64,000 nucleotides of DNA from Lepidodermella squamata (lineage: Eukaryota > Animalia > Gastrotricha). The DNA lies in contig JBLDXI010000020.1 in the NCBI GenBank assembly GCA_047495785.1, positions 1,798,001 through 1,862,000 on the forward strand, in the 5' to 3' direction. The position numbers and the translations under genes are program-made. How positions within the stretch are numbered: the stretch's first letter is position 1; every line of letters begins with the position of its first letter. Under the pieces are notes generated by a model. The model was not told the origin of the DNA. It made no database searches and worked only from the letters and a program-made list of their open reading frames with translations. Positions 5,151 through 38,679 of this stretch are shown one piece after another.

Positions 5151-5474
5151 TTACAAAAAGTAGGCCAAATAGCGCGATTTGGCTAGCTTATGAACCGGAT
5201 TTTTGTTGTGCGCGCTTTGATAAAATTTCTGCATGAAAGCATCAGCCGCCAATTTATCGCTGAAAACAGACGCATCGCCGCCAAAATCGACGCCCATGGC
5301 GCCGGCCGATACGTAGCCATCGTCCTCTTCACTGACAGCCGATCGCTCCTGCTCTTCGATGCCAGCATTAGCATTGTCTTCGCTGTAGATTCCGAAGTCG
5401 TCGTAACACGTTGCGCATGGAATCATCGCACAATAAATTGAAACAATTATCAATAAATTTACGTAGAGATGCAT
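5151..5474 (-). CDS. Secreted prepropeptide, GVDFG/DH31-like family
   Basis: ATG at 5474 (MHLYVNLLIIVSIYCAMIPCATC signal); EEDDGYVSAGAMGVDFGG...FSDKLAADAFM; close paralogue of 6011-6328. Confidence 0.8.
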   Translation of the reverse strand: MHLYVNLLIIVSIYCAMIPCATCYDDFGIYSEDNANAGIEEQERSAVSEEDDGYVSAGAMGVDFGGDASVFSDKLAADAFMQKFYQSAHNKNPVHKLAKSRYLAYFL

Positions 5475-6010
5475 CTGAGACACCGCAGTTTTCTGACCTT
5501 TACCGAGGGACAATATTTTATTCCCACGTTTTTGCGAAAAGTGAATTCAACGATACAACTCGGCATCGCAAATATTTTGTTACGCGGGACAATTCCACCT
5601 CGTCGTTTACGAATCCCAAAATTAATGAAATTTTTTTTAATAAAAAGTGACATTATTTCCTGACAGGCCCGAATGCAACTCCTGAAAAAACAAACCATTT
5701 CATCTGTTACCAACCACGCAAATTGTTTAAACTGATATTGAGCGTGGAACTTCTAACCGTTTGTCCTATTCAGAACAATTCATAAAAAATATTGGTAAAA
5801 GGTACAATTTTTTGAGATTTAATCTGTACCAATGCATTTTTCCCTTTAAGCGAAGCACCGAAAAAAAATTCAAATTTTTCGGACTACGAAATACTCGGCT
5901 AACAAATTTTTGTGATCCTGATTCCTTTAGCTATTGTAATATAAATTCTAAAATTTCGAAACAGTTCATTTTTATTGAGAAGACAATAATTAAGTAATGC
6001 TCGACATTGG

Positions 6011-6328
6011 TCACAATAAATTAGCCAAATAGCGCGATTTCGCGAGTTTGTGAATCGGATTTTTGTTATGCGCTTTTCTATTGAATCTCTGCATGAAAGC
6101 ACTAGCGGCCAATGGATTGCCGAAAATGGACGCATCGCCAAAATCGACGCCCATAGCGCCGGCCGATACGTAGCCATCGTCTTCTTCCCGAATAGGCAAT
6201 CGCTCCATTTCAACGCTATTTTGATATTTGTCCTCGGTTCCAAAATCGGTCGCATCGAATTCGTCGTAACAGGTAACCATCGAAATGATTGCTAGTAAAT
6301 TTAGAACTAGGAGCTTTGACCGATGCAT
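6011..6328 (-). CDS. Secreted prepropeptide, GVDFG/DH31-like family
   Basis: Signal peptide; EEDDGYVSAGAMGVDFGDASIFGNPLAASAFM...AHNKNP; C-terminal half nearly identical to 5151-5474. Confidence 0.8.
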   Translation of the reverse strand: MHRSKLLVLNLLAIISMVTCYDEFDATDFGTEDKYQNSVEMERLPIREEDDGYVSAGAMGVDFGDASIFGNPLAASAFMQRFNRKAHNKNPIHKLAKSRYLANLL

Positions 6329-6781
6329 CGAAATTTTTTTATTTTTTCTTAAATGGCTAAAAATATCGTGTAACGGGAACTTAGGATATATCGTAGTCGC
6401 GCGATCTCACAAAATTTTATTGCAGGGGCGATGGCAATGATTAATCTATTTTTCGGTCAAACGCAAAAATAGACCACGCGAAATAATATCCTCATTTCCC
6501 CCACGCGCTACTATGTATGTGATGATATTAAATTATTTTACATGTTTCCTTCCTGAAAAATGCACTGTCTATAATACAGTTATCTATTCCTCGGACATCC
6601 TAATATGCGTGCTCACTCAATCAGAATAAATGAAATATTCCACCTTAACTTTTTTATTGTAATTCAAACCGCACATTTCGCTACAAATAAAGAGCCACAA
6701 AATTCGCGAAAATCATATTATTATTATTATAACCGTGAGAGTTTTATATTCAAATGAGTGATGACAATTAGAATTAAAAGC

Positions 6782-7108
6782 CTAGCGCCGTCGACGTCCG
6801 CTCAACTTGACGCCATTGAAACTTCGCTGATTGCTGCCGATGTTCTGGCGACGGAATGAACCGAATAGGCTGTTTTTGTCGGAGATAGACCCGCCAGCTC
6901 CGAAATCGACACCGAAATCAACGCCAACTTCACCCTGGCCCTGGTAGCCGTCGTCCATTTCAGCGACTCGAGGTTCCTGATCATGGCTCGTACCCTCGCC
7001 ATCGGAAGTCAACGCCTCATCGCCTTGGTAGAATGCCTCGTCATCCTGAGCGTAAGACACAGCTACAAAGCAAGCGACTGCTAGCAAAACGTTCAAATAT
7101 CGGTTCAT
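6782..7108 (-). CDS. Secreted prepropeptide, GVDFG family (motif doubled), ends GRRRR
   Basis: Signal peptide MNRYLNVLLAVACFVAVSYA; DDGY...GVDFGVDFG; terminal G-RRRR amidation/cleavage signal. Confidence 0.8.
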   Translation of the reverse strand: MNRYLNVLLAVACFVAVSYAQDDEAFYQGDEALTSDGEGTSHDQEPRVAEMDDGYQGQGEVGVDFGVDFGAGGSISDKNSLFGSFRRQNIGSNQRSFNGVKLSGRRRR

Positions 7109-8807: not shown

Positions 8808-9047
8808 TTATCTGCCGAAAACCAGTCCGCGAGCTTGCCCGTGCATTATCCTTCGCCGCAGGCTGTCGTAATAAGCCGGCTTCATTCTGCCCTGCGAAGG
8901 CAGGTGGAAATCGATGGCGTGGTCCTCGAGCCAATCTCGTTTCTCGATCGGATACTTCCATAAAACCTGACCATTCGCGACTTCTATGAAGCCGAGGAGT
9001 ATCAGCAAAAAGATGGGTAAAAAGAATGCGATCCTGATTTGGTTCAT
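8808..9047 (-). CDS. Secreted prepropeptide yielding a ~40-aa amidated peptide DWLED...HGQARGLVF-NH2
   Basis: Signal peptide, KR convertase site, terminal GR; C-terminus shared with 16021-16305. Confidence 0.8.
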   Translation of the reverse strand: MNQIRIAFFLPIFLLILLGFIEVANGQVLWKYPIEKRDWLEDHAIDFHLPSQGRMKPAYYDSLRRRIMHGQARGLVFGR

Positions 9048-9183
9048 TTGAAAATAATCCTATAAAATATTTTTCTCTGGTTTTATTCCTCAAAATTATT
9101 CTTAAAAATACATCCGTGTAAGCAAATATTTGGCTATCATTATTCTCAGATTATAAATCACCGCGCTAGTTTTATCTACGTCA

Positions 9184-9390
9184 CTAAAATCGAGGTGAGC
9201 CGCGGCTGAGGCCGTCGATGAGTAATCGCCGCAGTTTGGCTTGTTTACGAGCCGTATTTCCGTAGCTCTTCAGGTCGCGCTCGATGTCGAGGATATTGTC
9301 ATGCTCGCAGTTGATAGAATCGATGAGACAGATGACCATCACTGTCAGGACAACAATTAATAGCAACTGACTCAACACCCTCAGCGCCAT
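9184..9390 (-). CDS. Secreted peptide (68 aa), LRR..G..RG..F family, non-amidated SPRF end
   Basis: ATG at 9390 (MALRVLSQLLLIVVLTVMVICLIDS); LRRLLIDGLSRGSPRF aligns with LRRRIMHGQARGLVF. Confidence 0.7.
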   Translation of the reverse strand: MALRVLSQLLLIVVLTVMVICLIDSINCEHDNILDIERDLKSYGNTARKQAKLRRLLIDGLSRGSPRF

Positions 9391-9718
9391 GTATATAGAT
9401 GCAGCTCCTTTTAAAAATTCAGAATGAAAATGGAACAGAAACAATGATTTTTGTGTCACACGATGGCGGCAAAACAAATCAATCAATGATAATAACATAT
9501 CCCTACTCTCGCTTTTCAGGGTTAAATTATTTAGAGAAATGCATGGCATAATTCCGCCGACGCTTGAGTTGCATCGCCCCATGGGAAGACAACAATCATC
9601 AATAGGGAAAATCTCCGCAAAAAAATTGGATTAAAATTAATTAATTGTCCCGATTAATCATGTGGGTTGAATTTTTATTTCAATGAATAATTTCCAAAAT
9701 AAAAATGCCTCGAGTCTA

Positions 9719-10114
9719 TTATTTTCGACCCCAGCTATTCGACATTAAATTGTAGAAGACTGCTTGAATTTTTTCAGGCTTGATTTTGGCCTGACCAAAT
9801 TCAGACGTTCCATTAGCTAGGCGACGAATATTTTCCAAAACGCGTTGTTGCTTTCGACGATTTAACAACAGCAACTGGCGCTGGGTCAGTTTTTGATCGA
9901 CTTGATCTATAAGCCGAGCCTGTTTCCTCGTTAGCTTAGAAGCCAGCTTCATAAATTCATTGTTCAGATCGGACATTTTGAGCTTGCTCGACAGAGATTT
10001 GCCTGGGGCTCGATTTTCAGACCGACTTTTCCTCGTGTTAGGGCTCGAAACGGTTGTAGATAGAACGAAAGGCGATAAAAAAGTAGCCATCAAAATTAAG
10101 GTTAATAAATTCAT
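9719..10114 (-). CDS. Secreted prepropeptide, W-amide family (FYNLMSNSW-NH2)
   Basis: Signal peptide, helical pro-region, terminal WGRK; paralogue of 11561-11968; TATATAAA upstream near 10245. Confidence 0.85.
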   Translation of the reverse strand: MNLLTLILMATFLSPFVLSTTVSSPNTRKSRSENRAPGKSLSSKLKMSDLNNEFMKLASKLTRKQARLIDQVDQKLTQRQLLLLNRRKQQRVLENIRRLANGTSEFGQAKIKPEKIQAVFYNLMSNSWGRK

Positions 10115-11560
10115 CGCGATTTAATTATTACTAAATTCAAAGAAAAAAATCAAACATTTTCATGCAAAAAACTGAGAACTTTGTAAAATTCTTTTGGGAA
10201 CAAAAATCGAATAAATTAAGTGTAGATGCTAGATTTGTCCCTTTATATAGAGTATATACATTTTTCTTGCTTTCATGCAAATCGAAAGAATATATATCAC
10301 GTTTCGAACAAGACTATATGTGCTTGCGTGGGGTTTGAAACTAACAGCGATTTTTACGGAAATTTCGTCCGGCGTGTTCGAGAAATTAATGATTTATATA
10401 AACTTGTGATGATGGCAATGTCAGGGGACTTGTTAATAATATGAATGAAATACAGGAAATGTTTCTCAAAGCAGTCCGTTCGTCTCGCCTACCTCCTGCT
10501 AAATATTCTAGTATTTTGATCTCAAATGGAAAATAAGCAAATTATCGCAGCGATAAACTTACCGGAGATTTCAATAGAAATCAGAATTAGTAGCCGATAG
10601 ATTCCAGGGAAACAGAACCCGGTTTGATTTCCTAATTCAGCTCTCCAGATACAATAATATATTGGGAAATTCAGGTAGGATGTCCTGTTAATAGGCTGAG
10701 GTCAGAAAATATAAAATGTAAGGCAAAGCCGGATTTCTCGACGTACCCTGTTAAATTGAGCGGACAATCACATTTGACCTAAAAGTTAGGCCAACAACAA
10801 CCTCATTATTTTAATATTAAATCTCTGATGTGATATGACTGAATGAATGAATCATGCGTATAACTAAGTTCTCATCCGCACTATATTATGGTTTATTGAA
10901 TAAAAAATTCCAAAGTGAATATCCTCAAGTTACACCTAAGCAAGATATTTTTTTGAGATCAAAAAATCAGCTTTCAGCTTATCTACTTTCCCCATAGTCT
11001 CAGCGGAAATGACAAAAAGCTTATGATTCACAGCTTCAGCAAAGTTCCATTCATATTATTAGGTATTACAATTATTAGGCACTGGCTTCTGTTTTTTTTC
11101 GAAGGGCCACGGCTTAAATTCTTAGGAAGGATCTAGCCCTGCCCTTGATATCAGTCCTACCTTTTGTAATTCAGTATTTAGTATAATTTCTTCCCGATCT
11201 CCTTTTTAATTAGTTTTCTTTAATTTTCTCTAATTATGCTTTCTTTAATCAATACTAAAGTAGTATATTTATACATCAATTTGTACATGACAGGATGATA
11301 CCGATTAAAAAATTCTGGATAAAAGATTAAGGTTCGGCCTTGTTTAGCAGGGAAGGTACAGTACTCAGTTGGAGAACATCTAGGGCAGTATCTTCCAATT
11401 CGGTGAAGGCGAGATACTTCAATCAAATCTAGTAGCCAACCGCTGAACCTCTCAGTTTCAGTGACTGCTGAAAAAATGAATTTTTATTGCTAAAAGCTGC
11501 AGATTACAAAGGACTGAAATAAACACTGATATAATATGGGACTGAAAATGCGCTGGCAGC

Positions 11561-11968
11561 TCAACGACCCCAACTATTCGCCATCACATTGTACCAGACG
11601 GCTTGAACTTTTTCAGGGTTGATCTTGACGTTGCCCATCCCCGCCATTCCACTCGCCAGTTTACGAAGATTCTCAATGATTTTCTGGTTTTTGCGCTGAA
11701 TATCAGTTGGTGGCTGTGGTTGCCGAACGGAGAGCTTCTGTTCGATTTGTTGCAGCAATTGCTCCTTGTTGCTTGCCCGTGAAGCCGCTGATGCTAACGG
11801 AATTTTGTTCTGTAGCACAGACATGGTGTTTCTGGTTGCTCGGTGAACAAAATCAGTCTCGCTCTGCTTCAAATTTGCGTTTTGCGAGCCATCGTCGAAA
11901 AGTGGCGTTGTTTTTGTAAACGGGAGAAAAACGGCTGCTGAAGCGATGAATAACAAAAAATTCATCAT
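11561..11968 (-). CDS. Secreted prepropeptide, MIP/AstB-like W(X)7W-amide (WYNVMANSW-NH2)
   Basis: Signal peptide; terminal WGR; KIxPEKxQAV[WF]YNxMxNSWGR shared with 9719. Confidence 0.85.
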   Translation of the reverse strand: MMNFLLFIASAAVFLPFTKTTPLFDDGSQNANLKQSETDFVHRATRNTMSVLQNKIPLASAASRASNKEQLLQQIEQKLSVRQPQPPTDIQRKNQKIIENLRKLASGMAGMGNVKINPEKVQAVWYNVMANSWGR

Positions 11969-14662
11969 AAAATTCTAGATAAAATTCAGAAATTTTAAAA
12001 TTATTCTCAGCATAAAAATGAGGTTTAATCAAGCAATATTGTTGGCCATTTTGAAATATTAATTAATAAAGTAGAACGGGTATACGAGGAGGCCATCTCA
12101 CTTCCTATATTGATTAAAGACGGGCGAAGATGCGGGGGTAATAACATGGATTCAAGAAGCAGAAATTTAACTCAGGCATGCATATCAAAGACAGCATCGG
12201 TTTCAGGCTTCGATTAAAACATCATCTCCGATGATTTGTTCCCAATCGATAAATCGTCCTTTTGCTACTGCATACTATTCGCTACGATTGAAATTAGAAT
12301 TATAGGAGCAATGGTGACCCTCTATATATTTTTTAACTATAACATTTTTTAGCTCGGCTAATGTTTGGGCTAAAACATTTCGAATGTCATACGGCTCCAG
12401 ACGAGATTCAACGACTTGAGTGATGCCGCCTACTCTGATATTGAATTAACAAGCCAGGAATAATTGATTTATAATTGCAACACGTTTTTGGCGCTTGAAA
12501 AACCGGAACAAAAAGCACTTACCGTTCCCGACCTAATTTCGCGCAGTCGATGATACGATATACTTATAATTGACTATTTAATTAGACGAACATTAGCGGG
12601 GGAAAGTGGGGTGTGCTGAATTTCCAGGAAATCACAAGAGAATTGATGAAGTGGAACGATGATTGACTTTCCATATTCACTATGCCCTGGACCGATTTCT
12701 CAGGAAATTTCTCGGGAATTCCTAAGGTTTAGACCTCTTGCATGACCCTTCTTAACGGTGTTCCTATATCCTCCTAAAAAATGCGAAGCCATGAAAAGAA
12801 GGCTACTACTTTTCTACAAATGATGTTTTTACCAAGCGCGATCCCGAACTGTAGAAATCCCTAAACTGGAAATCGACTGGGTGTGTGAGAAAAAGTAATA
12901 AAATGTTAAGTGATGCATATTTATTATATAAGCGCGCGCATTATCTCATTGCGCAGCCTAATTTTTCGGAAGCCGCGAAATTCGCGCATTAGATAATAGA
13001 CCAGACAGATTACCCGTGGGTAATTGATCGGAGAAATTGACCGAGCCTGTGTTATATTTATTTAAAAAGAATCCGGTCTCGTTTTATTGTCCAAATGGCG
13101 ACCTTTTTATCGGCCTCGGATAAAGAGCATTTTACGTAAAAAAAAACAGAATATCTTTTAGCGGAACAAAATCTGCTTGTTGCGGAACCTAATTTTAGGT
13201 CGCTTTCCGAATATTTCTACGAATTTGAGGCAAATTATCAACTCTGTAGTAAAGGATGATTCTTATACAGAATTCTACGCTGAATTGTAGGATGATTTAT
13301 TATAAATTCATAAATTTATTATAGGTTTCAGGCCTATTGAATAATTAATTCAATGGAAATATGGAAAATTTGATTTCCCTTATGGCTGAATCAACTTTTT
13401 AAGACGGACTTTTTATTTTATTTTTTTTACGCTATTTTCATAGGGGTATGACCCTTTAACATCCCAAAAAGTGGCTCCAGATACTGCGCATGTAGGAATA
13501 GGATTACTCTATGGCTTGTTCGTTGTTCACAAGCAAAATAGCATAGTTGGGCACGAACCAGCAATTTTCGTTCGTTACAACAAAAGTTCGTTATATATGT
13601 GTCGTACCGTTATGAGCAATCCGCCCCAATTGGCAATTGGGTTACCTTAAAGAGAAATTGCTCTAAAAATCCACTTTTTAAGCAAATTAATAATTCCCTA
13701 AATAATTATTTCCCAAAACGATACATCGATGACCGATAATCGTGGTATTTTCAATTTATTCTCTACTTATTGTCACTTTTTGGCATTAATGGCTGGAAAT
13801 TTCAAATAATACTCAAATTTAAATTTTCTTAAAGGATGTCAACCCTAGCAGTTTCATTTGTGGTTCCCCAGTTCTATAGTATGTGATTCCCCTTGCTTGA
13901 ATTTTCAGATTCCTTTTTCCCACAGAAGTTTATCCTAGAGACTCTTTCAAGCTCCATGAGATACGATTGATGTGAACTATAGGGGGTTGGGTTTACTTTT
14001 TAGACTGATCAATTGCTTTAGATGACGAAATCAATCAGTCGGAACTAGGATCATTATCTTGAACCTTGAAGGTTCAGCAAAAGTTCCAGCTGCCAACTAT
14101 GACCTATTAGTCGGTTTTTGGCGCTTGAACTTCGGGAAAGCTTTCTTATATCTCTATCAACCCACCGAGTTAGAGATTTAATCAGTGAGCAACCTTTTTA
14201 GGCTACAGGAGGAAATATTCGGTGTTTCTAGATGCTGTCAATTATTGTCCTTAGCGGTATCTTAATATCTCCATCTAGGCATATTGCCTCATGGGTTATC
14301 CCAATTGCCTTTTGGGAGGATCGCCTAAAACGGTACGACATATGCAGAATCGTTCCTTATAACGATTCTTCAGTGTATATCGATCTAGAGACAACCACCT
14401 CAGTGACTCAGCTTGACTCGCCGTAGCCCAATTTTCCACGTACAGGACATTAGGATTTCCTCATACACTTTGACCTCGATATTTTATTATTCGATATAGA
14501 TATACCAATAAATAATAAATAATGTACCAATTACAATTGAACACCAAATTTCGTTGGCGAATAGCCAATAAAAAAGGATGTTACATGAAGTTAACGGCCC
14601 TCGTTTTTTTACATTAAATGGTACCAGAAATCTTTGTTTTTGTTGCCAACCAGATTATCTGC

Positions 14663-14959
14663 TTAATTGCCGAGCTTAGTTCGTAATGCGTTCATAAAAC
14701 CCGGTCGCAGCTGACCTGGCGCAATCCGGTTCGAACCTTCAGCTACCATTGCCAATTTGTGCTGCAAAAACGGCGAATTCGTTCTGTGAGAATTGAGGGA
14801 AGCATAGCGAGGCTGGTTTAAACCGATGGGCCGTGATAGTAACAGGTTACGTTGGGCTTCAGACCCTGAGACCCCAACAGAGTTCGACTCTGAATAGGGA
14901 AAACATAGGACGCCTTGAAGTAAAATCACGGCAACGAGAAAAACTTTTAATTCAGCCAT
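14663..14959 (-). pseudogene. Truncated duplicate of 15377-15793
   Basis: ATG at 14959; a deletion of about 39 bp and a TAA cut the ORF before the still visible ADNLVGNKNKDFWYHLM* tail. Confidence 0.7.
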
Positions 14960-15376
14960 GTCTCTGGGGAAAAATCTAAAATATCGATGAAAGGAGCAAT
15001 TTAAGAGCAGGAAGCCCATTGAAAACACCAAAATTTGTTCCACTGAAAGTAAGACCCAAAAACCTCTACTTTCTCGATTAATCTCCAAAAGCCTTGAAAA
15101 CTAAATCAAGATAGTTTCACAATGCCTTCAGTTCCGCAAAGCCCAAATTGTCTAAGATTTTTGACAAGTTTTTAGCTGCGAACACACCGATATGAAGCTG
15201 TAAAATGAAAATTATATTGAGCTAGAGACAACCACCACAGTGACTCAGCTTGACTTGCCGTGGCCACGCAGAGGAAATTACGAGTTCCTCACACTTTGAT
15301 CTCGTTATTTTATTAATCGATCGATGTACCGATACAACATTAGAGGATAAATTGTGTTGTGTTGGCAAAGAGGCTG

Positions 15377-15793
15377 TTACATGTTGTTAACAGCCCTTGT
15401 ATTTGCCATTAAATTGTACCACAAATCTTTGTTCTTGCTGCCGGCCAGATTATCTGCTTCCAGCTCCTCAGCCTGGTTTCTGTTACTAGCCGCCCCGATA
15501 TTGCCGATCTTAGTTCGTAGTCCCTTAATAAAACCCGGCCGTAGCTGACCTGGCGCAATCCGGTTCGAACCTTCAGCTACCATTGCCAATTTGTGCTGCA
15601 AAAGAGGCGAATTAGTCCTGTGAGAATTGAGGGAAGCATAGCGAGGCTGGTTCAAACCGAAAGGCCGTGATAGTAACAGGTTACGCTGGGTTTCAGACCC
15701 TGAGACCCCAACAGAATTTGACTCTGAATGAGGGAAACATAGGACACCTTGGAATAAAATCACAAGAGCAAGAAACACTTTAAATTCAGCCAT
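15377..15793 (-). CDS. Secreted prepropeptide, degenerate W-family member (LWYNLMANTRAVNNM, no amidation signal)
   Basis: ATG at 15793 (MAEFKVFLALVILFQGVLC); WYNLMAN matches 9719/11561 but SWGR is lost. Confidence 0.75.
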   Translation of the reverse strand: MAEFKVFLALVILFQGVLCFPHSESNSVGVSGSETQRNLLLSRPFGLNQPRYASLNSHRTNSPLLQHKLAMVAEGSNRIAPGQLRPGFIKGLRTKIGNIGAASNRNQAEELEADNLAGSKNKDLWYNLMANTRAVNNM

Positions 15794-16020
15794 ATCTCTG
15801 GGGAAAAAATCTAAAAAAAATTTCGATGAAAGGAACAGGAAGAGACAATTGAATTTCAAACAAGGACGATGGCTGATGCAATTTCCTAAATTAGCTGCAC
15901 ATGAATAGGCCCTTATAATATAGTTTTGGGAATTGTGGGTGAAAAATTGATTCATTTATTTTTCGTCTGGCTTCTAATTTAAGACATAATATTTGATTAT
16001 AGACATTTCAGAGTTTGCCA

Positions 16021-16305
16021 TCAGCCAAAAACTAGATCCCGCGCCTGGCCGTGATTGATGAGCCGCCGCATCGACTCCCACGAATACGATTTGTAGCCTC
16101 TAGGTGGCGTTGTTCGAAAGTAAACCCGTCGCCTGTTGCTCAGGCTGCCGCCTGGCCAGAAATTTTCATTGATAGCCATTGTTACAGGAACCATAACAAA
16201 CCCGCCGCCGCCTTCCATATCATCTTCAACGTTATTCCGCGAGAAGCCTGGATCAGTTTTGGCTAAGGGAACCACGAGGATGAAAATCAAAATAAATCGC
16301 AGCAT
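16021..16305 (-). CDS. Secreted prepropeptide yielding a ~33-aa amidated peptide VYFRT...HGQARDLVF-NH2
   Basis: Signal peptide, RRR cleavage site, terminal Gly-stop; paralogue of 8808-9047. Confidence 0.8.
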   Translation of the reverse strand: MLRFILIFILVVPLAKTDPGFSRNNVEDDMEGGGGFVMVPVTMAINENFWPGGSLSNRRRVYFRTTPPRGYKSYSWESMRRLINHGQARDLVFG

Positions 16306-16472
16306 ATTTTGAACTCAAGCCAATAAATGAGTCGAAAGCATTGACCAGTGACCACTCGTTCAATTTTACGGCTCGGAAAATTTCATTTCCTGATAAATCT
16401 GAAGTATATAAGATCGTTCAATTTGTTTATTTCTTTAAAAATGAAAAGATGGTGAATAATACAAATAATAAA

Positions 16473-16793
16473 TTATTTTCTGCCCCAACTATCGGCGATT
16501 TTATGCCATTTTTGAACGTCACCGCCGTTTTTCAGTAGTAGGCGGGCTTTTTGCGACGATTTTTGATCGCCAGTTGATTTGCGGCTGCTCATTTGATTGT
16601 TCGAATCGTTAACAAGACTTTGCAGGGCCTGGATGTTTTTCAAATCTTTCGATAAATTGTTGGCTCTTGTCGGGACAACCAATAACCGCGAACCTTCACA
16701 ACAGGTGTCGAGCGCCATGAAAATCGCAAAGAATCCTAATGCGTACGAAGTGGCGTGCATTGCATGAAGTTTAAAAATACCTAAAATTGACAT
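16473..16793 (-). CDS. Secreted prepropeptide, MIP-like W(X)6W-amide (WHKIADSW-NH2)
   Basis: Hydrophobic leader (start may be the Met at 16760); terminal WHKIADSWGRK. Confidence 0.85.
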   Translation of the reverse strand: MSILGIFKLHAMHATSYALGFFAIFMALDTCCEGSRLLVVPTRANNLSKDLKNIQALQSLVNDSNNQMSSRKSTGDQKSSQKARLLLKNGGDVQKWHKIADSWGRK

Positions 16794-17631
16794 AAAATTC
16801 TGGTAATTATATTTTGGGAAAATATCTCCTAATTAATTGGTAAATAGTGCAGTAGCATAATAGTTTTGAGTTTCAACTAATAGTTCCGCCCACTGTATTT
16901 TTCGCAAAAAAATAGGAATATTTGTATTTGGGTGTTTACCGATGTGACAATTACTATCGTCTGTTGACAATATTATTCAGTGGTCATTCGAATGAAATGC
17001 CATGACAGCCAAGTTGATCTGGGACGCTTTGAAGCCGATATAAAATAGGTCCGAAGATGCACACCTTTTATTTAAGGTTCTAGTACTAATTTTCCCGACT
17101 TTCCATCCTATAGGATTTTATATTTTAGCAACCAGGTACCCTCATGAATGTCTAATGTTATAATGCCGGCTCACTAGACTGGTGAAATCGGGAAAATCAC
17201 TGATTTTCAAAATCGATATTGGAAATCGATATCGGCTATGCGGGAAAAATACGCATGATAGTGATGAATTAAGATTCGCAGGAGATCGGGAAAACTCGAA
17301 AAGCTAGGAAGAAGTCTTGTACTGGAGCCTCAAATGTAGTGCTGGAACCCACGAAGTGTCAGGTTGCACTTACCCACGTCCTCTACAAAAAATGGCAGCC
17401 CGGTTCCGAAAGTGTAGGGGCGGCATCGGCTAGAATTTCGGACGCATTGAAACTTGTACCAAGATGTTTAATTCGATTTCTTTGGGACCTCTTTTTATAC
17501 TATTATCATAGTCAAATTTATGCATATCGAATTTTCACCATCTTTCATCTTGCGTGGAAAAAAGTACGAAACAACGCTAATTTTTATTATTTTAGCAACA
17601 TTAGCCAAAAATAAATTGACCGAAGTTGATA

Positions 17632-17985
17632 TTATTTTCGGCCCCAGCTGCTGCCGATCACGTGCCACATCGCGTTGTCGGCAGGCAAGTCGCCGTTTTG
17701 TTCCATCCACGCCGGCCATTTGCCATTGATTGATTGATGCACCAATAATTTCGGCGGTTGAACTTTGATTATTATAGCTGGCACCATAGGTCGGCGAGCA
17801 GAAGCTAGTCTCAAAGATTCGTTGTCATTTTCTGAAAAGATCGAAAGCTCCTGATCTTTTGCCGCATTTTCGATTTCACTGACAAGATATGCTTCGATTT
17901 TAGGTAAAAATGGCGCAGATCTGGTCATCGGCATTGCGAGAGAAATCAAAGAAATAGCGAATAATGATAATGATAATCGCTTCAT
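17632..17985 (-). CDS. Secreted prepropeptide, MIP-like W(X)6W-amide (WHVIGSSW-NH2)
   Basis: Signal peptide, RR site, terminal WGRK; recent duplicate of 18438-18797. Confidence 0.85.
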   Translation of the reverse strand: MKRLSLSLFAISLISLAMPMTRSAPFLPKIEAYLVSEIENAAKDQELSIFSENDNESLRLASARRPMVPAIIIKVQPPKLLVHQSINGKWPAWMEQNGDLPADNAMWHVIGSSWGRK

Positions 17986-18437
17986 TTGAAATGTGTGTAT
18001 TCTTTCAACTAAAATTCTCCAAGTTTTAGATGTTTATAGCTGGAAGTACATAAAGCTTGAATGTAGACTGTTTCGAATAAATTATTTGTCATATCCATTA
18101 TTTTCTGAAAGAGACCTATTTTTAATCGATATATAAAAAATTGTCGTTTTATTATAGCGCAACTTGTCCTCCACCTACTCAAGATTCCCATCTATATAAC
18201 CTTAATATAATACAGGGATTATAAACAATTAAAAATTCAAAAAATCGCCTGCTAAATTTGGGCGTGGTAAATTTGGACAATAAGTCATGTGATTCAATAT
18301 TCGACGCCTGTACAAGTTAGAACGGACGCACTCCTCGCACCTGTAATTTTGAGGACTCGGAAATTTCGAGTAAAAAGAACGCAGCGAACAAAAAACTCAT
18401 TTTTATTTGTGCGCTGTAATAATAATCGAACGCAATA

Positions 18438-18797
18438 TTATTTTCGGCCCCAGCTGCTGCCGATCACGTGCCACATCGCGTTGTCTTTGTTGTCGGCAGG
18501 CAAGTCGCCGTTTTGTGCCATCCACGCCGGCAATTTGCCATTGATGATTGACTGAGGCGCCATTAATTTCGGCGGTTGAATTTTGATTATTATAGCCGGC
18601 ACCATCGGTCGGCGAGCAGAAGCTACTCTCGAAGACTCGTTGTCATCTTCTGGAAACAGCGAGAGATATTTCGCCTCATTTTCGATGTCACTACTGACAA
18701 GATTTGCTTCGATTTTAGGTAAAACTGGGGCAGATCTGGTCATCGGCATTGCGAGAGAAATCAAAGAAATAGCGAATAAAAAGGACAATCGCTTCAT
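18438..18797 (-). CDS. Secreted prepropeptide, MIP-like W(X)6W-amide (WHVIGSSW-NH2)
   Basis: As 17632; upstream flanks are also duplicated (unit about 0.8 kb). Confidence 0.85.
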   Translation of the reverse strand: MKRLSFLFAISLISLAMPMTRSAPVLPKIEANLVSSDIENEAKYLSLFPEDDNESSRVASARRPMVPAIIIKIQPPKLMAPQSIINGKLPAWMAQNGDLPADNKDNAMWHVIGSSWGRK

Positions 18798-19173
18798 TTT
18801 ACTATAGATAATCTTTTTTCAACTACTATTAGTGATTATCAAGTCAGACGACTGTGTTTCCAATAAGATGAAGAGGCTGGGGAAGTCAGTTATTTGTAAT
18901 ATCCATTATTTTCTTGCACTCTGAGAAAAAATAATCGATATATTAAAAATTGTCATTTTATTATAAAGCGCAACTTGCCCGCCGCCTACTTAAGATTTCC
19001 AACTATAGCCGGTAATTTAATACAGTGATTAAACGATAAAAAATGTAGAGAAACAGCTATAATGTCGTACCAAAACGGAATTAATTACGCTAAGTAATTT
19101 TTCAAAGTGAGGAAGAATCGCATTAATCACAAGTCATCTCCAGAAATTCGTCATTTTCCTGGAAATTCTGAAT

Positions 19174-19473
19174 TTATTTTTTGCGGCCCCAACTGCCAGC
19201 AAATAAGTGCCACATAATGACATCTTTGCGCTCGAGGGGAGCAGTAGCGTGCTCAGATAATTTTCGACCTGCTTTATTGCGTCCAAATTTTATTTCGATC
19301 ACAGGTATCAAAGGTCGACCCGTCGCATTATTCAGGCCGCTGTGATATTGCTGCTTCAAAGCCGTATTTACCATTTCAACGAGCTGAGATTGCCGCTCGA
19401 AGTGACTGGTCGAAAAATCACATTTCAGTGATAAAATTAAAATTATGGAAATTAAATTCTTAAAATGCAACAT
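19174..19473 (-). CDS. Secreted prepropeptide, MIP-like W(X)6W-amide (DVIMWHLFAGSW-NH2)
   Basis: ATG at 19473, signal peptide, RK site before DVIMWH, terminal GRKK; RPLIPVIEIK resembles RPMVPAIIIK of 17632/18438. Confidence 0.85.
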   Translation of the reverse strand: MLHFKNLISIILILSLKCDFSTSHFERQSQLVEMVNTALKQQYHSGLNNATGRPLIPVIEIKFGRNKAGRKLSEHATAPLERKDVIMWHLFAGSWGRKK

Positions 19474-19689
19474 AATAATGAAATGTCCGGAGGGTATTTG
19501 TTTCAATTATTTTTGTACTTGAAATGGGTGCCCGTCAAGTTTCACATTTATTTTTGTCCAGCACAAATGTTTAGATAGACAAAATCGCTGCCAATATTTA
19601 CAGGTATCCATAGCCTGATTTTTTTATTGATTACTTCTTATTATCAAGTGTATAAAATGCCGTCGTTTAATAAATTTAATAAAACATTA

Positions 19690-20025
19690 TTAGCGGCCCC
19701 AACTGCCGGAAAAAACATGCCACATGATGACATCTGTCCGGTTTAGCGGCTTCATCCGCTCGCCATTCCTGTTTACAAGATAAGTCTCTGCTTTGCCAAG
19801 TTTTCGGCCGTTGTTGTTATTAATATTATTACTCGGCTGTTGTTTCGCGGCGAGTTGAGCGGCGGCTTTGTTCAATAATTGTTGCTTGACCTTCTCCAGC
19901 AGCAGAGGTCGTCGTTGCAGCAGTTTCTCGGCTGAATTTCGGTTCGAAACTGTGCCGTCGCAAATTTGCAGAATAACAACCCATAAAATTAACAGCAGCC
20001 AAAGCAGGCTATGATAATTTCTCAT
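19690..20025 (-). CDS. Secreted prepropeptide, MIP-like W(X)6W-amide (DVIMWHVFSGSW-NH2)
   Basis: ATG at 20025, Leu-rich signal peptide, terminal WGR. Confidence 0.85.
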   Translation of the reverse strand: MRNYHSLLWLLLILWVVILQICDGTVSNRNSAEKLLQRRPLLLEKVKQQLLNKAAAQLAAKQQPSNNINNNNGRKLGKAETYLVNRNGERMKPLNRTDVIMWHVFSGSWGR

Positions 20026-20972
20026 TGTAGACAAATTGATTTTCTAAATGAAAATCAAAAGCAGCAATAATTTTTCGGGGTTGATGATTAGTGATTTAAA
20101 TCTGCGGTAATGCGTGAAATAATCGAAACAACTAACAATCACATATTGCGACCGGATAATTGACGGCGGAATGAAAATCCCGTACTAAAACGGCAGCTGT
20201 ACCTATAAGGAAAATCGACTTTTATAGGTTTACGTGCTGTTGCGGAACAAATTTCGAGTGGACCTGGCGTCTATTTTTACGAAACGCCTACAGGTTTCAA
20301 CGCCAATTAATGTAATGCATTTCTACCACTCCTTAAAAATGTCGGCTAAAATAGGGGAATAAATCTTTTAATTTAAAATTAGGTACTAATTGTCGTCAGA
20401 ATTCGCCATGAGCCATGGAAATAATAGGAAAATTTTAATAAAATTATTAAACAATTACGAAAAACTGGTCTGTTCAAAAAGCGAAAAATCGAATTTTTTC
20501 GCCATATATCGCAGTCAGAGCTTCAACTATACTATTGACCCTATTTTACGACCCGTGGAGAAGTTATCATCCGAGCTTTATCACGGTCATCACGCGATCT
20601 TCTCCGCACATGATTATCCGCAATAATTGGGTAATAATCGAAAAAAAACAAATTGAGCCTGAGCCATATTATATCTTAAAAAATATTAATAATGACAAAT
20701 TTGAAGCTTTCAGGGTTTGCGGGGCGGGACATCAAGAGTAAGATTTTGTCTACATCTGAAATTTTCATTAATTATATATTGATCATTTCCTCGTGGGAGT
20801 TCCCCATCATTTTTCTTTCGCCATTTTTTCGAAGATGCGGGACACGAAACAGAGGTTGGAAATGTATTCAAAAATTTATTATTCACTACAAAATAATTAG
20901 AAATATAATAGTATGGTGGACACATGTATCATCCAGTCAAAACAACTCTCATTTCCGAATTTCGTTCCAGTT

Positions 20973-21230
20973 TTACTTCTTGCCCCAAGTTTCCGCCAAA
21001 CTGTGCCAGCGTTCGTTAGTATTCTGCACATTGGCGATCTTCTGGCGGCCAGCGCGGGCGACAAGTCGTGGAGCCTCGAAAACAATGCTATCACCGCCGT
21101 CGCTTACAACAAGAGCGTCGTTATCTTCATCGAACAGAACAGACCGTTTTGATGGGTTAGCGTTTGCCATTGAAATTATGACGAAAATTGAGGCAAGCCC
21201 CAGAGTCACTAGAAGAGTCGACGAAGCCAT
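20973..21230 (-). CDS. Secreted prepropeptide, MIP-like W(X)6W-amide (WHSLAETW-NH2)
   Basis: Signal peptide, KR site, R-WHSLAETW-GKK; the most canonical MIP-like member. Confidence 0.85.
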   Translation of the reverse strand: MASSTLLVTLGLASIFVIISMANANPSKRSVLFDEDNDALVVSDGGDSIVFEAPRLVARAGRQKIANVQNTNERWHSLAETWGKK

Positions 21231-22303
21231 TTTCGCTTTAATAATAAAAAATCTAAAAAAATTGAAAAATTATTGAAAAAAACAAGCGTGAAAAATAGGA
21301 ACGTTCCAAGCGATATTAACGATTTTTTAAGTGGGATTTTTTTAGCAATGACCCTCAAGTTATCGAATGAAAGAGTGGCAAAAAAACTAAAGAGGGGGCT
21401 CGATTTTATTTCCCTGGAGATTATACAACGCCGTTATCGTTTATATATAGGGTATATCGGAACGCCAAATCGGCTTTTTTGTGCCATTTAGCAAATAAAC
21501 GCCTCCTTCTGCCGATGTCTGAATAGGAAAATTAAATAAGGATGGATATATCGTTTAATCAAAGTTGACGCGTCTAAATATTAACATTATATTTAAACCC
21601 TCTATTTATATTTACTCATTCCTATTATGCGGCGTGGTATATGATAATGAGGGCAACAAAAATATTTAAAAAAGCGCGTTAAAAAAATCGGCCAGTTTAA
21701 CCTTCAAATATGGGAAATATATACCCCAAAACTGATTATCATGGATACGTCAATTTTCATCACAAGATTACTCGGTATAAATCTGGCTTATCGATTATGA
21801 CGATTAAACTGTTTCTAAGACTTCAATAGGTGATCAATACTATAGCACCGGGCATAGGCTTAAACCGCCTCTTGAGGGTGGGTCTTGTTTCTTCCGCCTG
21901 GTAATTGCGCTATCGAGTTAATAATATAGTCTGCAAAATACAATGCAAGGTGTGGTTGGTAATGAGGTTCACACCTTGCACGCAAAAAAGTAGGATTAAT
22001 TGAGAAAAAAACAACACAAAATTTGGCAAAAGTTCGAGAAATTTTCAAAAGTGCCAATCGACCTGCTGATTTGCGCGCCAGCAATCATTCAATTAAGGTG
22101 AGAGCAATAATTATTTATGCAGCACTGGCGGGGGTGTATAACGAACATTTGTCGGAGGGGGTGTCTGGGCTGTCTGTTAAATCACGAGGTTGTTTTTTTC
22201 AAATTTAAAAATATCTGCAGCAGGCATGTTTTTACTTCCACATCTCTGTCCGAGTTTTACAACGCAACGACTTGATTTAAAAAAAAAGTCAGAAAAATAG
22301 TGT

Positions 22304-22822: not shown

Positions 22823-23797
22823 TTAGTCGGCAGTAGGCACCTTGGCGGCAAACTCTTCGCTAAGCTTCCAAAGCCGTTCGGCCATCACGTCATCCGACGC
22901 GATCGCTCCTGGATCAACCACTTGACAGTTACTGAAATAAAGGGACAATTTATAACCTGTTTTTCATCGGACGGGGATTAAAATTTACTCGAAATATTTG
23001 CCGGACAGATTTTCGATGCCAGGTTGAGATGCGCAGTAGACAGTAGTTTTGGCGCCATTTTCAGCAGACATGCCAAATACGTTGAACAGGGTCTTTAAAA
23101 ACCAGCCCTGATTGCGATCGATATCAGTCTTAATCACACCCGGGTGCAAAACGTAGGTCGTCACGTCTTTCGCACCACTGGCCTGGAGCCGGCGATGAAG
23201 TTCCCGAGTGAACAAAACATTAGCCAGTTTCGTCTGTGCATAGGCTTGAGATGGCGAGTAAGCTCCAGGTTTTTCAAAGTTGACATCGTCAATGTGAAAC
23301 CCGGGTTTACTAGCCCAGAATGCAATACGATGCGCGGCCACATTGACAATTCGACTCGGGGCTGAGGCTGTCAGTTTTTCGAGAAGTAAGGTCGTCAGTA
23401 AAAAATGGCCGAGATGATTAGTCGCGAAGCAAACTTCATTCCCATCGACTGATAGAGTCCTCTCAGCCGGCCCGTAAAGACCAGCATTGTTCACTAGAAC
23501 GTGAATTTGAGGCTCAGCTTCGATGACCTCAGCCGCGAATCGGCGGACAGATTTGATTGAAGAAAGGTCGAGTTGGCGAACAGCGACTACGTCCTCCTTA
23601 ACGCCGGCTTTTTCTCGAATTTCTTTAGCTGCCTCCTCGGCAGTTGTGACATTTCGGCAGGCTAGAATGACCTTTTTCGCGCCACGCCTAGCCAACTCGA
23701 GGGCAGCAGTTTTTCCAATGCCGGTATTAGACCCGGTTACGATGCAAACTTTGCCAGTAACGAACCACTGCGGCTCTTGTTCTGCAGCTTTTGCCAT
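22823..23797 (-). CDS. Short-chain dehydrogenase/reductase, RDH11-14-like (SDR copy 1; exons 23797-22989, 22931-22823)
   Basis: TGSNTGIG Rossmann motif, NNAG, FATNHLGHFLLT, YAQTK, HPG; GT-AG intron restores DNC...LWKLSEE. Confidence 0.9.
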
Positions 23798-25240
23798 TGC
23801 GATTGATTTCAGTGGGGAAAATGAGAATAATGAAAATGATCTCACGACTAACGCAGAAATTTTATGCATAATAATAATAATAATTTATCTCGTTTTCTCT
23901 TATAGTACTGCTCTAGCACGAGAGAGAGAGAGAGAGACAACCTCATATTTCAAGACGGCCTGGTTTTAGCAGACACACTCACACACAGCGCACGTGTAAT
24001 ACAGCTGATATGCCGTAGTGATGAATCACGCGTAGTAAAAAAAATCCATACGCTTTTACGCTGTGCGTTATAATAATGAATGGCAGCAGCCAGAGTATTC
24101 ATCTGGTACTACGAACTAGTGGACTTTGCCTGGTTTGAAGTTTGAGGTCAACCGCAGTCGGCTGTCTTACACATTAGGGTTTTAAATCAAACGAAACGCT
24201 TTGGGGGTTGCAATAACGGCAAAACGAATTTTATCACCGTAGCGCAGGATAAAATTGGACACTTCGGCTTTGCAGCTAAATAGGTTTGTAACGCCGTACG
24301 ATAAAAACACATGGTGTGTTGCATAAAATACCTCGTTTCTTGAGCTCTCGAATGGCGCAAGTCCCAAGGTGATTGGAGCAACAATCGATTTTTTAAGAAA
24401 TATTACAAGCAAGTCAACTTGAACGTGGCTTTGGGCCTCCCTCTTATCATCTCTCAAACGAATAAACATTGTGGGACGAATAAAATTTCTCTCTCGCAGT
24501 TATCGAAAGAAAAATGAAGATCGAACTATTGGTTTTTGTAGGGCATTCCCCTGAATGTTTCAGGTGAACATCGGCTAATTTTGGACCGCTGCGCAAACAT
24601 TTATTTCTCTTGTTTTTCGTTTTTTATTCGTTGTCTGTTCATAATTTTTTCCAAATTTGACTCAAAGCGCTCAGAAAAAACTGACAATTCCCAATGGCGT
24701 TCCGCATGCAAATTACTGGCAAATGAGTGGGTCCAATATGTCCAACTAGCCATGAATGCTTTTGATCGCCAAAAATAAGGAAAAAATCGTAAAATCACCA
24801 AGTTTTACCGATAAATCGGGGATCACCCTGCACACCTTTATACCAAAAACCATCGATTTCAGAATCAAGACTGATTTTTAATATTCGAAAAACATGGTAC
24901 CCTCCCGCACGGTATGGTAAGTGGGAAATATTAAAAAACAATTCATGCTGGGAGATTGAAACCTTCAACAGTTTAACGCAGCTCTCACCGAGGCATGGGG
25001 TTGAAAAACGAAGCCCAAAAAACAATCCGCTTGTCCGAAAAAAGACCACGCTATACAGTACACGCGAAAAACAAGTATTTTTTCTTGAAAACTTGTTCAA
25101 GCCCGAAAGGCTATTACAACAATCATCCACACGTTACAGGTATGAAGCCAACTTTCGTCTGTAATGCAGGTCAATAAATCGACACTTCATATAAATTGAG
25201 CAGAAATAACTCAACATCTCATTATAAAAAACTATGCCTA

Positions 25241-26908
25241 ATGAAAGCTTTCCAGTATTTTTCAGTTTTAATTTTGACATTCTTCATTGAGCATATTGAT
25301 GGCTCCAGCGAAAGCTACAGATCGGAAAAATTGGATCAAATTAAGAATAACATCTCTCCCGGTCTTGTGAAAACGATTGCTCGGCCAAGATATGTCTTAT
25401 TTGTTATGGACGTGGCCTCGAGATCCCACTTTAAGCCGTTGGTACTGCTTTCGAAAGCTCTGATGAAGCGTGGCCATCGCACAGCGCTTGCTAGTCTCTT
25501 CGACGCAGCGACATGGTACAAACCTGGCCAGTTTGGCAAATATTACCAACTGAACGGAACCTTGGAATACCTATCAAACGGCTCAATCGCGCAGGAAAAA
25601 TCTAACGATTTTATGGCTGGAATCGGCAGGGAAGCGTCAAAGGCTGATACATACGATGGCATAAACAAGCTTCTCATGGCGTTTTCGAAATTCTTCTACG
25701 AAGGCGCCTATCTCAGCCTGAAAGATGCTGTCACTGAAGATCGGCCTGACATTTTGGTCTGCGACTGGATGAGCTTCTCATGCATGAATGTCGCGAAAAA
25801 ACTCGGGATACCTTACGTTGTCACATCGGCCGCGTCAACAGTTCCGAACGCCCCAGACCTTCCGGGTTACTTACCATCACCCTTTGCACCTTCCAGTCTT
25901 GGAGGATTGGGTATATTAGAAAGGCTGTATGTCAAATTCGTCCTGTGGCCGAAAATAATTTACCGATTCATTCCGTATTTCACTGAGATCAAGCAGCTTG
26001 GTGTAAAACTCGGTCTTGATCAAGTTAGCCATATGCTGCAACCAGAGAAAAATGTTCATTTCTTCATTCACAACTTCTTTGGCTGGGACTACCCGCGCCC
26101 AATGTCGCCATTCCTACACATACTAGGTCCTATTGTTGAGCCGGATATCTATGAAATGGACCCTGGACTTCAGAAATGGCTTGACCAAGCTCAGTCTAGG
26201 AAGGAGAGCGTGATCTACATCGCATTCGGATCTGGCTTTCTGCCGACTGATTCAAGGATTTCGGGTCTGTTGAAGGGCTTCCAATGCAGCTCGTCCCAGG
26301 TCAACATTTTATGGTCTTATGGCGGCGCTAATCTCACTGCAATAGTTCCTGAGGAAATTCTCAAGAACCCGGAAAAGCATCCTCATTTCAGACTGGAGAA
26401 ACGCGTGGCCCAAATCAAGGTCCTCAACCACCCGGCTGTTCACCTGTTTGTAAGCCATGGCGGCATTGAAAGTCTGTTCGAAGCATTCTTAGCCACCAAG
26501 CCGATTCTTGTCAATCCTATCACGGCAGATCAGCCATTGAGTGCTGAGCGTGTAACAGAGCTGGGCGTTGGCCTTTCTCTAAGCCACGATTCTGAGAACA
26601 TTGAAGACGAGGCATGTAAGAAATCGACGACTTTGCTGCATCGGTACGTGCAGAAAGATCCAGAGCTGATGCGAAATCTAATGAAAATGGGCGCTTCCTT
26701 ATATTACAATGCCCAAAGGATTGAGGCAGCGGTGGACATCATAGAAATGGAGATGACAATCGGGTCCGAGCACCTGCGAATGTTTGAAGATGAAGCTCCG
26801 TTCTACAGGATACATGATTTGGACCTTTATGCTGTCGTTCTACTTATTTTAGGTTTCATCATTGTTTTGATTCGCGGAGTAAGGAAGGCAAAGTCGAAAG
26901 TTGATTGA
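25241..26908 (+). CDS. UDP-glycosyltransferase (GT1/UGT), intronless, with signal peptide and C-terminal TM
   Basis: SH catalytic His (SRSHFKP), CDW, UGT signature AQIKVLNHPAVHLFVSHGGIESLFEA...P...DQ, TM helix and KSKVD (KxKxx) tail. Confidence 0.92.
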   Translation: MKAFQYFSVLILTFFIEHIDGSSESYRSEKLDQIKNNISPGLVKTIARPRYVLFVMDVASRSHFKPLVLLSKALMKRGHRTALASLFDAATWYKPGQFGKYYQLNGTLEYLSNGSIAQEKSNDFMAGIGREASKADTYDGINKLLMAFSKFFYEGAYLSLKDAVTEDRPDILVCDWMSFSCMNVAKKLGIPYVVTSAASTVPNAPDLPGYLPSPFAPSSLGGLGILERLYVKFVLWPKIIYRFIPYFTEIKQLGVKLGLDQVSHMLQPEKNVHFFIHNFFGWDYPRPMSPFLHILGPIVEPDIYEMDPGLQKWLDQAQSRKESVIYIAFGSGFLPTDSRISGLLKGFQCSSSQVNILWSYGGANLTAIVPEEILKNPEKHPHFRLEKRVAQIKVLNHPAVHLFVSHGGIESLFEAFLATKPILVNPITADQPLSAERVTELGVGLSLSHDSENIEDEACKKSTTLLHRYVQKDPELMRNLMKMGASLYYNAQRIEAAVDIIEMEMTIGSEHLRMFEDEAPFYRIHDLDLYAVVLLILGFIIVLIRGVRKAKSKVD

Positions 26909-27035
26909 CATTCCGTGCGTTTTACTTTTATGTCACTCGAAATTTTGGAATGTTTATATATCTTTTAATAAATATATGATAACACTTTGAGAAATGTTTT
27001 ACTGAGAAATATTAGATCATCCCTTTAAGCCCAAA

Positions 27036-38516: not shown

Positions 38517-38679
38517 TTGATGATATCGAGAAATGTAATTATCTTAGCCCAGTTTGAGGGACAAGAGAAAGAAAAATGGCGAATAATGATAAGCAGCGGC
38601 CTTTTATTATTAGTTTTGAAGATAAAAAAAAAACAAGTTGAGGTCAAAGTTCATTGGAGTGGTTTGATAAATCATTTAA

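Follow-up and report, generated by a model that had tools for sequence, protein, structure and literature searches.

Cluster genes and their transcripts

A series of small genes predicted to encode secreted proteins with a C-terminal tryptophan-amide peptide is described here from the gastrotrich Lepidodermella squamata. The DNA analyzed, referred to as the window, is a stretch of 64,000 nucleotides (nt) from contig JBLDXI010000020.1 (positions 1,798,001 to 1,862,000), and coordinates are positions in this window unless another locus is named. An open reading frame (ORF) listing over 9000-22000 contained eight minus-strand ORFs at 9719-21230, each ending in [W/Y]-x6-W-G-[K/R]1-2-stop. A sequence-only reading of the same DNA had quoted eight such C-termini and assigned them to a family like the myoinhibitory peptides (MIP), also known as allatostatin B (AstB), encoded as one peptide per gene. 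All eight were found where that reading had placed them, all on the minus strand, and a single C-terminal copy of the peptide was present in each cluster gene. The cluster proteins, counted from the first ATG, are 85-135 amino acids (aa) long. Every one has a hydrophobic 10-residue core within its first 20 residues (Kyte-Doolittle [KD] value of 2.5-3.6 compared with 0.3-1.9 elsewhere) and none has Cys after residue 30, which leaves the mature part without Cys.

The genes, all on the minus strand, were named after the letters of their peptide cores. FYN (9719-10114, 131 aa) ends ..EK-IQAVF-YNLMSNSW-GRK-stop, has a hydrophobic core of KD 2.5 and is flanked by an acceptor-like AG 16 nt before its ATG and by AATAAA 39 nt after its stop. 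WYN (11561-11968, 135 aa) ends ..EK-VQAVW-YNVMANSW-GR-stop, and its core is the nearest of the cluster cores to the canonical WQVMENSW type described below. WHK (16473-16760, 95 aa) ends ..QK-WHKIADSW-GRK-stop; its start was set at the second Met of a longer ORF (16473-16793) because organism B, with which the window was compared, has a stop at codon 8 of that ORF. WHVa (17632-17985, 117 aa) and WHVb (18438-18797, 119 aa) end ..DNAM-WHVIGSSW-GRK-stop and ..NK-DNAM-WHVIGSSW-GRK-stop, respectively. WHL (19174-19473, 99 aa; longer ORF 19174-19506) ends ..RK-DVIM-WHLFAGSW-GRKK-stop, WHVF (19690-20025, 111 aa; longer ORF 19690-20034) ends ..NR-TDVIM-WHVFSGSW-GR-stop and WHS (20973-21230, 85 aa) ends ..ER-WHSLAETW-GKK-stop. 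A ninth intact member, WHM, which was missed by the first profile search of the genome, is located 272 kb downstream (G000:C20:2134007-2134348) and ends ..TR-SDLIT-WHMISGSW-GRR. Two further members, both on the minus strand, have decayed. The pseudogene at about 14594-14959 carries 2 in-frame TAA stops and the peptide remnant WYHLM-stop; its DNA aligns to WYN/FYN and is 89% identical over 300 nt to a neighbouring copy. The paralogue at 15377-15793 ends ..WYNLMANT-RAVNNM-stop and has lost the motif through replacement of the terminal Trp by Arg and of Gly by Ala. The family, with 9 intact and 2 decayed members in total, shows birth-and-death turnover.

The ending W-G-[K/R]1-2-stop was present in all nine intact members, W-x6-W in seven of them, and Y-x6-W with a preceding W or F in the other two. 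An x7 spacing had been proposed for an ending of the latter kind; the endings are present, but they align better as Y-x6-W after an extra aromatic residue. Similarly, the description of the pro-regions as largely unalignable holds between subfamilies but not within them. Thus, the pro-regions of WHVa and WHVb (17632/18438) are 84% identical and those of FYN and WYN (9719/11561) are 42% identical, and members of the WH group have a common internal motif, RP-x-VP-x-I-x-IK. The only stretch reported by a repeat search as common to five genes was the 51 nt that encode the peptide (63-100% identity).

Searches of the 121-Mb genome with DNA patterns stayed at the level of the reversed controls and gave 13 matches to W-H-x5-W-G-R (13 for the reversed control), 27 to W-x6-W-G-x-stop (36 for the control) and 21 to x-x6-W-G-R-basic-stop (16 for the control). 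The matches that terminated signal-peptide ORFs were those of the cluster genes and WHM only; none of the further matches, on C1, C9, C10, C13, C24, C29 and C42, ended a secreted-protein ORF.

Transcripts were sought in a 2015 sequencing run labelled 'RNA?' (X1) and in a run from a close relative (X2), both examined over 15900-21400. Coverage by X2 extended over the whole of this region, while X1 contigs were noted on 5 of its 6 cluster genes and were absent from several intergenic stretches; the gene on which no X1 contig was found is WHK. The contigs were located at 17556-17923 for WHVa, 19028-19395 for WHL and 20919-21254 for WHS. A single 562-nt contig spanned 18389-18899 at WHVb without a joint, and two contigs at WHVF (19597-19898 and 19869-20013) were unspliced across the stop codon. 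The idea that cluster genes splice on into more peptide exons was ruled out for WHVb, WHVF and WHS by unspliced contigs over the stop. Poly-T loose ends at 18389 (WHVb) and 20863 (WHS), situated 49 and 110 nt after the respective stops and just past AATAAA (30 nt after the WHVb stop), are the poly(A) tails of minus-strand mRNAs, which places the WHVb mRNA at about 18389-18899.

At its 5' end, the WHS contig ran on at 21254 into 18 letters foreign to the window. These are the reverse complement of the 3' end of a spliced leader (SL), joined at an TTTTTTAG acceptor. The 18-letter sequence occurred 39 times in the genome (at most one mismatch) as opposed to 0 times for the reversed control. Given that many copies are repeated in tandem arrays, where the donor AG/GTATGT follows, the leader is encoded by an SL RNA gene. 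Trans-splicing of WHS takes place 23 nt upstream of the ATG, so that the WHS mRNA consists of 20863-21254 plus the leader. An acceptor-like AG was noted 6-30 nt upstream of the ATG in 7 of the 8 other genes; none was evident for WHL. The SL RNA arrays, whose repeat unit measures about 680 bp, were found at G000:C17:1137000-1142600 and about 38 other places, and their exon ends ..GAATTTGATTTGTGTCTAAG before the donor GTATGT. A search of the first of these arrays against Rfam returned nothing, the 5S rRNA gene included; the leader string did not appear in any of the papers searched, and the spliced leader published for rotifers was absent from the genome even with 3 mismatches allowed. Among other lineage markers, neither COX1 nor a mitochondrial contig was found, and cellulose synthase was lacking, which speaks against a tunicate; the nematode cuticle-collagen N domain gave no match, but the same search also gave none in any control genome and is therefore no sign of absence.

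A 7-nt tandem duplication (CTGGCAC) in WHVa after 17777 (17777-17784) was found in both X1 and X2 relative to the window; it would shift the frame of this gene unless compensated by an unlisted indel. Loss of WHVa could be tolerated because WHVb encodes an identical mature peptide. Between WHK and WHVa, at 17188-17371, X2 contig depth was 9937 compared with approximately 100 (about 100-fold); numerous loose ends were present at 17187-17237, and the segment is a dispersed repeat of high copy number.

Constraint on the C-terminal peptide and its predicted processing

Selection was assessed between paralogues from Nei-Gojobori proportions of nonsynonymous (pN) and synonymous (pS) differences, with the C-terminal 16 alignment columns compared to the pro-region. 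For old paralogue pairs, synonymous differences were saturated (pS 0.7-0.9), whereas pN was 0.07-0.39 in the C-terminal columns and 0.45-0.61 in the pro-regions. The tails of the young pair, WHVa and WHVb, were identical. Among the 40 listed of 91 differences between the window and organism B, no amino acid replacement affected a terminal peptide, and synonymous changes at Arg codons in or beside one were noted twice. No fold was evident from AlphaFold (mean pLDDT 54.8, pTM 0.14), and a folded small protein was discarded on the basis of this low-confidence model. Given that only the tail is strongly constrained and that no fold is predicted, the functional unit is taken to be the C-terminal peptide rather than the whole protein. 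Conservation of the mature peptide while the pro-region drifts speaks for a signal constrained by a receptor rather than for a toxin or antimicrobial product.

Decay of two copies, the lack of X1 coverage of WHK and a WHVa gene that may be frameshifted in other strains could be taken to mean that the ORFs are chance or non-functional and that the motif is a remnant of repeated DNA without a protein product. Almost no credence can be given to this explanation. All nine intact ORFs have a signal-like core, transcripts of the genes were seen with poly(A) tails and the spliced leader, the tail shows a marked shortage of nonsynonymous changes although synonymous sites are saturated, and the genome-wide controls show that the pattern is no common repeat.

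The Trp-Gly-Lys/Arg-stop ending should need only carboxypeptidase trimming and amidation. Upstream of it, Lys or Arg is located 0-5 residues ahead of the 8-residue core in 8 of the 9 genes, the sites being RK-DVIM, NR-TDVIM, TR-SDLIT, NK-DNAM, EK-IQAVF and EK-VQAVW, with QK and ER directly abutting the core. A dibasic site upstream of the core was seen in only one of the nine (WHL). The earlier remark that most members lack such a site was therefore literally correct for all genes but this one, while the long N-terminally extended products expected from it lost ground, since basic residues at these positions predict peptides of 8-13 residues. Amidated 8-13-mers are also a simpler prediction than long products like sex peptide, a likeness for which nothing specific was found: the mature parts lack Cys, and the Trp residues of sex peptide are spaced W-x8-W, unlike the W-x6-W of the cluster. 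The predicted amidated products include DVIMWHLFAGSW-NH2, DNAMWHVIGSSW-NH2 and WHSLAETW-NH2. With regard to processing enzymes, the genome contained 35 matches to the Cu2_monooxygenase (PHM/DBH-type) domain, the best at 140.9 bits, and 10 matches to the proprotein-convertase P-domain. A single large tandem array on contig C13 (about 1.99-2.36 Mb) accounts for most of the Cu2_monooxygenase matches, and many of the matches contain stop codons; this enzyme family, to which the peptide-amidating enzyme belongs, is unusually expanded.

The near absence of dibasic sites, the lack of a basic residue within 17 residues of the WHVa core and the second conserved motif of the WH group would also fit whole secreted proteins that remain uncleaved, or exocrine products for mating, pheromone, adhesive or defence functions, in which the Trp-rich tail binds or anchors; birth-and-death with tandem expansion is, in addition, typical of secreted effector and reproductive proteins. 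Such products are nevertheless highly unlikely. Pro-regions are near-neutral between old paralogues (pN/pS about 0.5-0.75) with only the tail conserved, no fold is predicted, 8 of the 9 genes have a basic residue upstream of the core at a conserved distance, and the invariant Gly-basic-stop is as expected for amidation, whereas no role for it is apparent in an uncleaved protein. In arms-race effectors, moreover, it is usually the mature part that varies and the pro-region that is conserved, the opposite of the pattern in the cluster. The cluster genes are very probably precursors of secreted, amidated peptides.

Relation to Wamide/MIP genes and neighbouring families

Two spliced, multi-copy W-x6-W-amide precursor genes, referred to as the canonical genes, were found on the same contig, 1.6 Mb upstream (L001, G000:C20 ~198.4-200.4 kb). 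One has 2 peptide copies and the other at least 4. The six peptides, WQVMENSW, WRAMEQSW, WKAMENSW, WRAMEHSW, WVNMESSW and WLRMESSW, are dibasic-flanked and each is followed by G-K/R-K/R. The YN-type cores of the cluster (YNVMANSW and YNLMSNSW) are identical to WQVMENSW at 4-5 of 8 residues, and the WH-type cores likewise end in Ser-Trp and remain hydrophobic at position 4. In a column-permutation test of cluster cores against canonical cores, the observed similarity was reached by 25 of 720 permutations (approximately 3.5%) overall, by 10 of 720 for the YN type and by 42 of 720 for the WH type. Comparison of the family profile with a canonical precursor by hhalign aligned the last 22 C-terminal columns only (probability 71%, E 3.6e-5), and no alignment between cluster and canonical precursors was returned by BLASTP.

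These results bear on the alternative that the cluster is a convergent, unrelated Trp-amide family, that is, one of real secreted-peptide genes that are not derived from MIP/Wamide genes and act on other receptors. The short hhalign match, the lack of a BLASTP alignment and the marginal permutation result for the WH type are consistent with convergence. A Trp-amide terminus is known from other neuropeptide families too (PMC7270403), and the window is rich in unrelated small genes with amidation-signal ends, which makes rapid de novo birth plausible. The alternative is, however, somewhat unlikely in view of the YN-type cores, which match WQVMENSW at 5 of 8 residues and form a bridge to the WH type, the location of the canonical genes on the same contig, and the common spacing, hydrophobic position 4, Ser at position 7 and Trp-Gly-basic ending.

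Searches beyond the genome gave the following results. Pfam analysis of ten proteins yielded sub-threshold noise only, a word-indexed protein search with an 8-member alignment returned no homologue, and exhaustive hmmsearch of 1.84 billion representatives gave 0 hits at E<=1e-3. Protein collections of 5.8 billion and 1.84 billion entries contained no match, the cluster proteins themselves included. A scan of JGI metagenome contigs matched 82 pattern stretches, none of which was confirmed, and the cluster peptide strings were printed in no paper searched. As a weak lead, the language-model neighbours of WHVb were mostly peptide-hormone precursors. The assignment to a MIP/AstB-like family stands as far as sequence hallmarks are concerned: the first aromatic residue is separated by six residues from Trp-Gly-basic, position 4 is hydrophobic and positions 6-7 hold a small residue. 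Given the lack of database hits, homology to the MIP precursors of other animals was not demonstrable. The cluster family is invisible to homology-based annotation, and given that no homologue was returned from protein collections, motif-aware scans are needed for such genes.

The peptide exons of the canonical genes end in G-K/R-R directly before a GTAA or GTGA donor, which supplies an in-frame stop if the intron is retained. A duplicated first exon would thus already resemble a cluster gene, consisting of signal, spacer, one peptide and stop. The best explanation of the locus, to which a probability of roughly 60% is assigned, is that the tandem, same-strand, intron-less genes represent a lineage-restricted expansion of single-peptide genes of Wamide/MIP type that operate by the mechanism proposed below. 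Descent from MIP-type genes, to which the permutation and profile comparisons lend modest support, is the best, though tentative, reading of the sequences, and the cluster probably belongs to the Wamide/MIP system both functionally and historically.

In the proposed mechanism, each gene would give rise to its own mRNA of about 0.4-0.5 kb, trans-spliced to the SL and polyadenylated as was shown for some members. The signal peptide would direct the product to the secretory pathway, where a convertase would cut at Lys/Arg 0-5 residues before the core, a carboxypeptidase would remove the terminal Lys/Arg, and a peptidylglycine monooxygenase (the enzyme families being present) would turn Gly into Trp-amide, giving 8-13-mers of the form [W/Y]-x6-W-NH2. 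By analogy, the peptides would act as Wamide/MIP-type ligands, most likely on G protein-coupled receptors (GPCRs) of the MIP/sex-peptide receptor (SPR) type and/or on MIP-gated DEG/ENaC channels. On the simplest view, the family would have branched off, in this lineage only, from the canonical multi-copy genes of the contig; the presence of isoforms in separate genes would permit independent regulation of each. A search for Srw-type GPCRs (PF10324) gave 6 genome matches, the best of which (52 bits) is a two-exon rhodopsin-family gene (L011, G000:C54:4133228-4134614) and a candidate peptide receptor. A more specific proposal, that a multi-copy system was turned into 'one gene per isoform' by duplication of truncated first exons of a MIP-type gene, with some ligands possibly receptor-specialised (GPCR as opposed to channel) or non-neural, is distinctly unlikely. 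If it is true, some ligands may serve outside the nervous system, as fly sex peptide does.

Several observations weigh against the assignment of the cluster to the Wamide/MIP system. Likeness to the canonical precursors is limited to the peptide and no BLASTP match was found, so convergence on a short motif is possible. Two members have Tyr/Phe in place of Trp at the first aromatic position, and His at position 2 occurs in none of the published MIP sequences compared from part 1 of the PMC7270403 supplement. The repetitive precursor architecture that defines Wamides is seen in the canonical genes but not in the cluster. Upstream cleavage sites are nearly all monobasic, and the nearest basic residue in WHVa is 17 residues from the core. 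The identification of X1 as RNA was by inference only. No homologue was found outside the genome, and conservation appears to be demonstrable no further than the near relative represented by X2. The family is also subject to decay, with two dead copies and a possible WHVa frameshift allele in both sequencing runs. Finally, a search with exon 1 of the candidate receptor returned no named orthologue at the strict threshold of E<=1e-10, and the Atlas gave generic GPCR clusters only.

In many invertebrates, settlement, metamorphosis, feeding and gut activity are under the control of Wamide/MIP-type peptides, whose repetitive precursors are a textbook example. For a hormone family in which a precursor normally holds many copies, an arrangement of one gene per peptide is unusual, and the genome described here contains both classical multi-copy genes and at least nine single-peptide genes with the same motif. 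The two arrangements provide a natural experiment on the diversification of neuropeptide isoforms, inside one precursor as opposed to across separately regulated genes. For receptor deorphanisation in an animal lineage that has been little sampled, the cluster also offers approximately eight candidate ligands that are short and easily synthesized. Wamides have been reported absent in rotifers (PMC7270403).

A second family of small secreted proteins, encoded on the minus strand at 8808-9047, 9184-9582 and 16021-16305, is interleaved with the Wamide-type genes. The endings in this family are ..HGQARGLVF-GR and ..HGQARDLVF-G, with a variant ..GLSRGSPRF. The ..LVF-G gene at 16021-16305, which sits among the cluster genes and is unrelated to them, showed 3 synonymous and 0 nonsynonymous changes among the listed differences from organism B. 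More small secreted ORFs (..HRFAVF-G, ..MVRI-G and a GVDFG family) are present on the minus strand at 1340-7108 and, together with the cluster, bring the total to about 19 co-oriented peptide-like genes in 21 kb. Kinship of the cluster with neighbouring peptide families was rejected as a candidate, comparison of the FYN pro-region with the tail of the gene at 2048-2515 having given a non-significant E of 0.12. Further along the window is a tandem array of 8 short-chain dehydrogenase (SDR) genes of the retinol-dehydrogenase/DHRS13-like type (22985-41008), mostly with one large exon, the best named homologues of which (fish, amphioxus and arthropods) are 45-48% identical while one metagenome protein is 70% identical. 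A UDP-glycosyltransferase-like ORF is located at 25196-26908. Four tandem nuclear-receptor-like genes (43153-57026) have introns of about 50 nt, zinc-finger DNA-binding domain motifs such as ..CRLEKCYAAGMRV and ligand-binding-domain exons, and fragments of a hAT/ZMYM-type transposase are present at 46244-47706 and 49183-49518.

Comparison with known peptide systems

The plant CLE, IDA and CEP families have precursors of about 80-130 aa in which a signal peptide and a rapidly evolving variable region are followed by a single conserved C-terminal peptide of 8-14 residues, and their genes are often in tandem arrays. The analogy with the cluster is one of architecture only and implies no homology, as the kingdom, modifications and receptors differ.

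A closer comparison is with Drosophila sex peptide and DUP99B, for which there is likewise one ligand per gene and in which a Trp pair is important for SPR-type binding (PMC7270403). Sex peptide is a non-amidated peptide of 36 aa with a disulfide bridge (PMC7270403), whereas Cys is missing from the predicted cluster products, which carry an amidation signal, and nothing in the cluster points to male-specific expression.

Precursors of MIP, AstB and prothoracicostatic peptides resemble the cluster genes in the product that is predicted for the latter, a short Trp-amide peptide with a second aromatic residue six positions upstream, a hydrophobic position 4, a small residue ahead of the last Trp and a Gly-Lys/Arg signal for amidation and cleavage. 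MIPs are 9-12 residues long, which the 8-13 residues predicted for the cluster match, and a Trp-amide ending is found in other neuropeptide families as well (PMC7270403). Among the sequences in the PMC7270403 supplement, oyster MIP (WKSMSNSW-GKR) and a fly peptide (AWQSLQSSW-GKR) have M, L or I at position 4 and the ..SW ending, as does the cluster. Both Trp residues of MIP are needed to activate the MIP/SPR GPCR and the annelid MIP-gated channel, replacement of the C-terminal Trp abolishes activity, and isoforms of one precursor can favour different receptors (PMC7270403). The hallmark of Wamides is a repetitive proneuropeptide with multiple copies between cleavage sites (PMC7270403); the cluster genes differ from such multi-copy precursors in having one peptide at the extreme C-terminus with a mostly monobasic site upstream, and His or Asn at position 2 and, in two members, Tyr/Phe as the first aromatic residue are unusual.

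The canonical genes of the same genome encode peptides that resemble published spiralian and arthropod MIPs (PMC7270403 supplement). These genes differ from the cluster genes in that they are spliced and encode several peptides with acidic spacers, dibasic flanks and an invariant Glu at position 5, a residue that the cluster peptides lack at this position. Both sets of genes are nevertheless located on the same contig and have the same ..M/I-x-x-S-W-G-basic ending.

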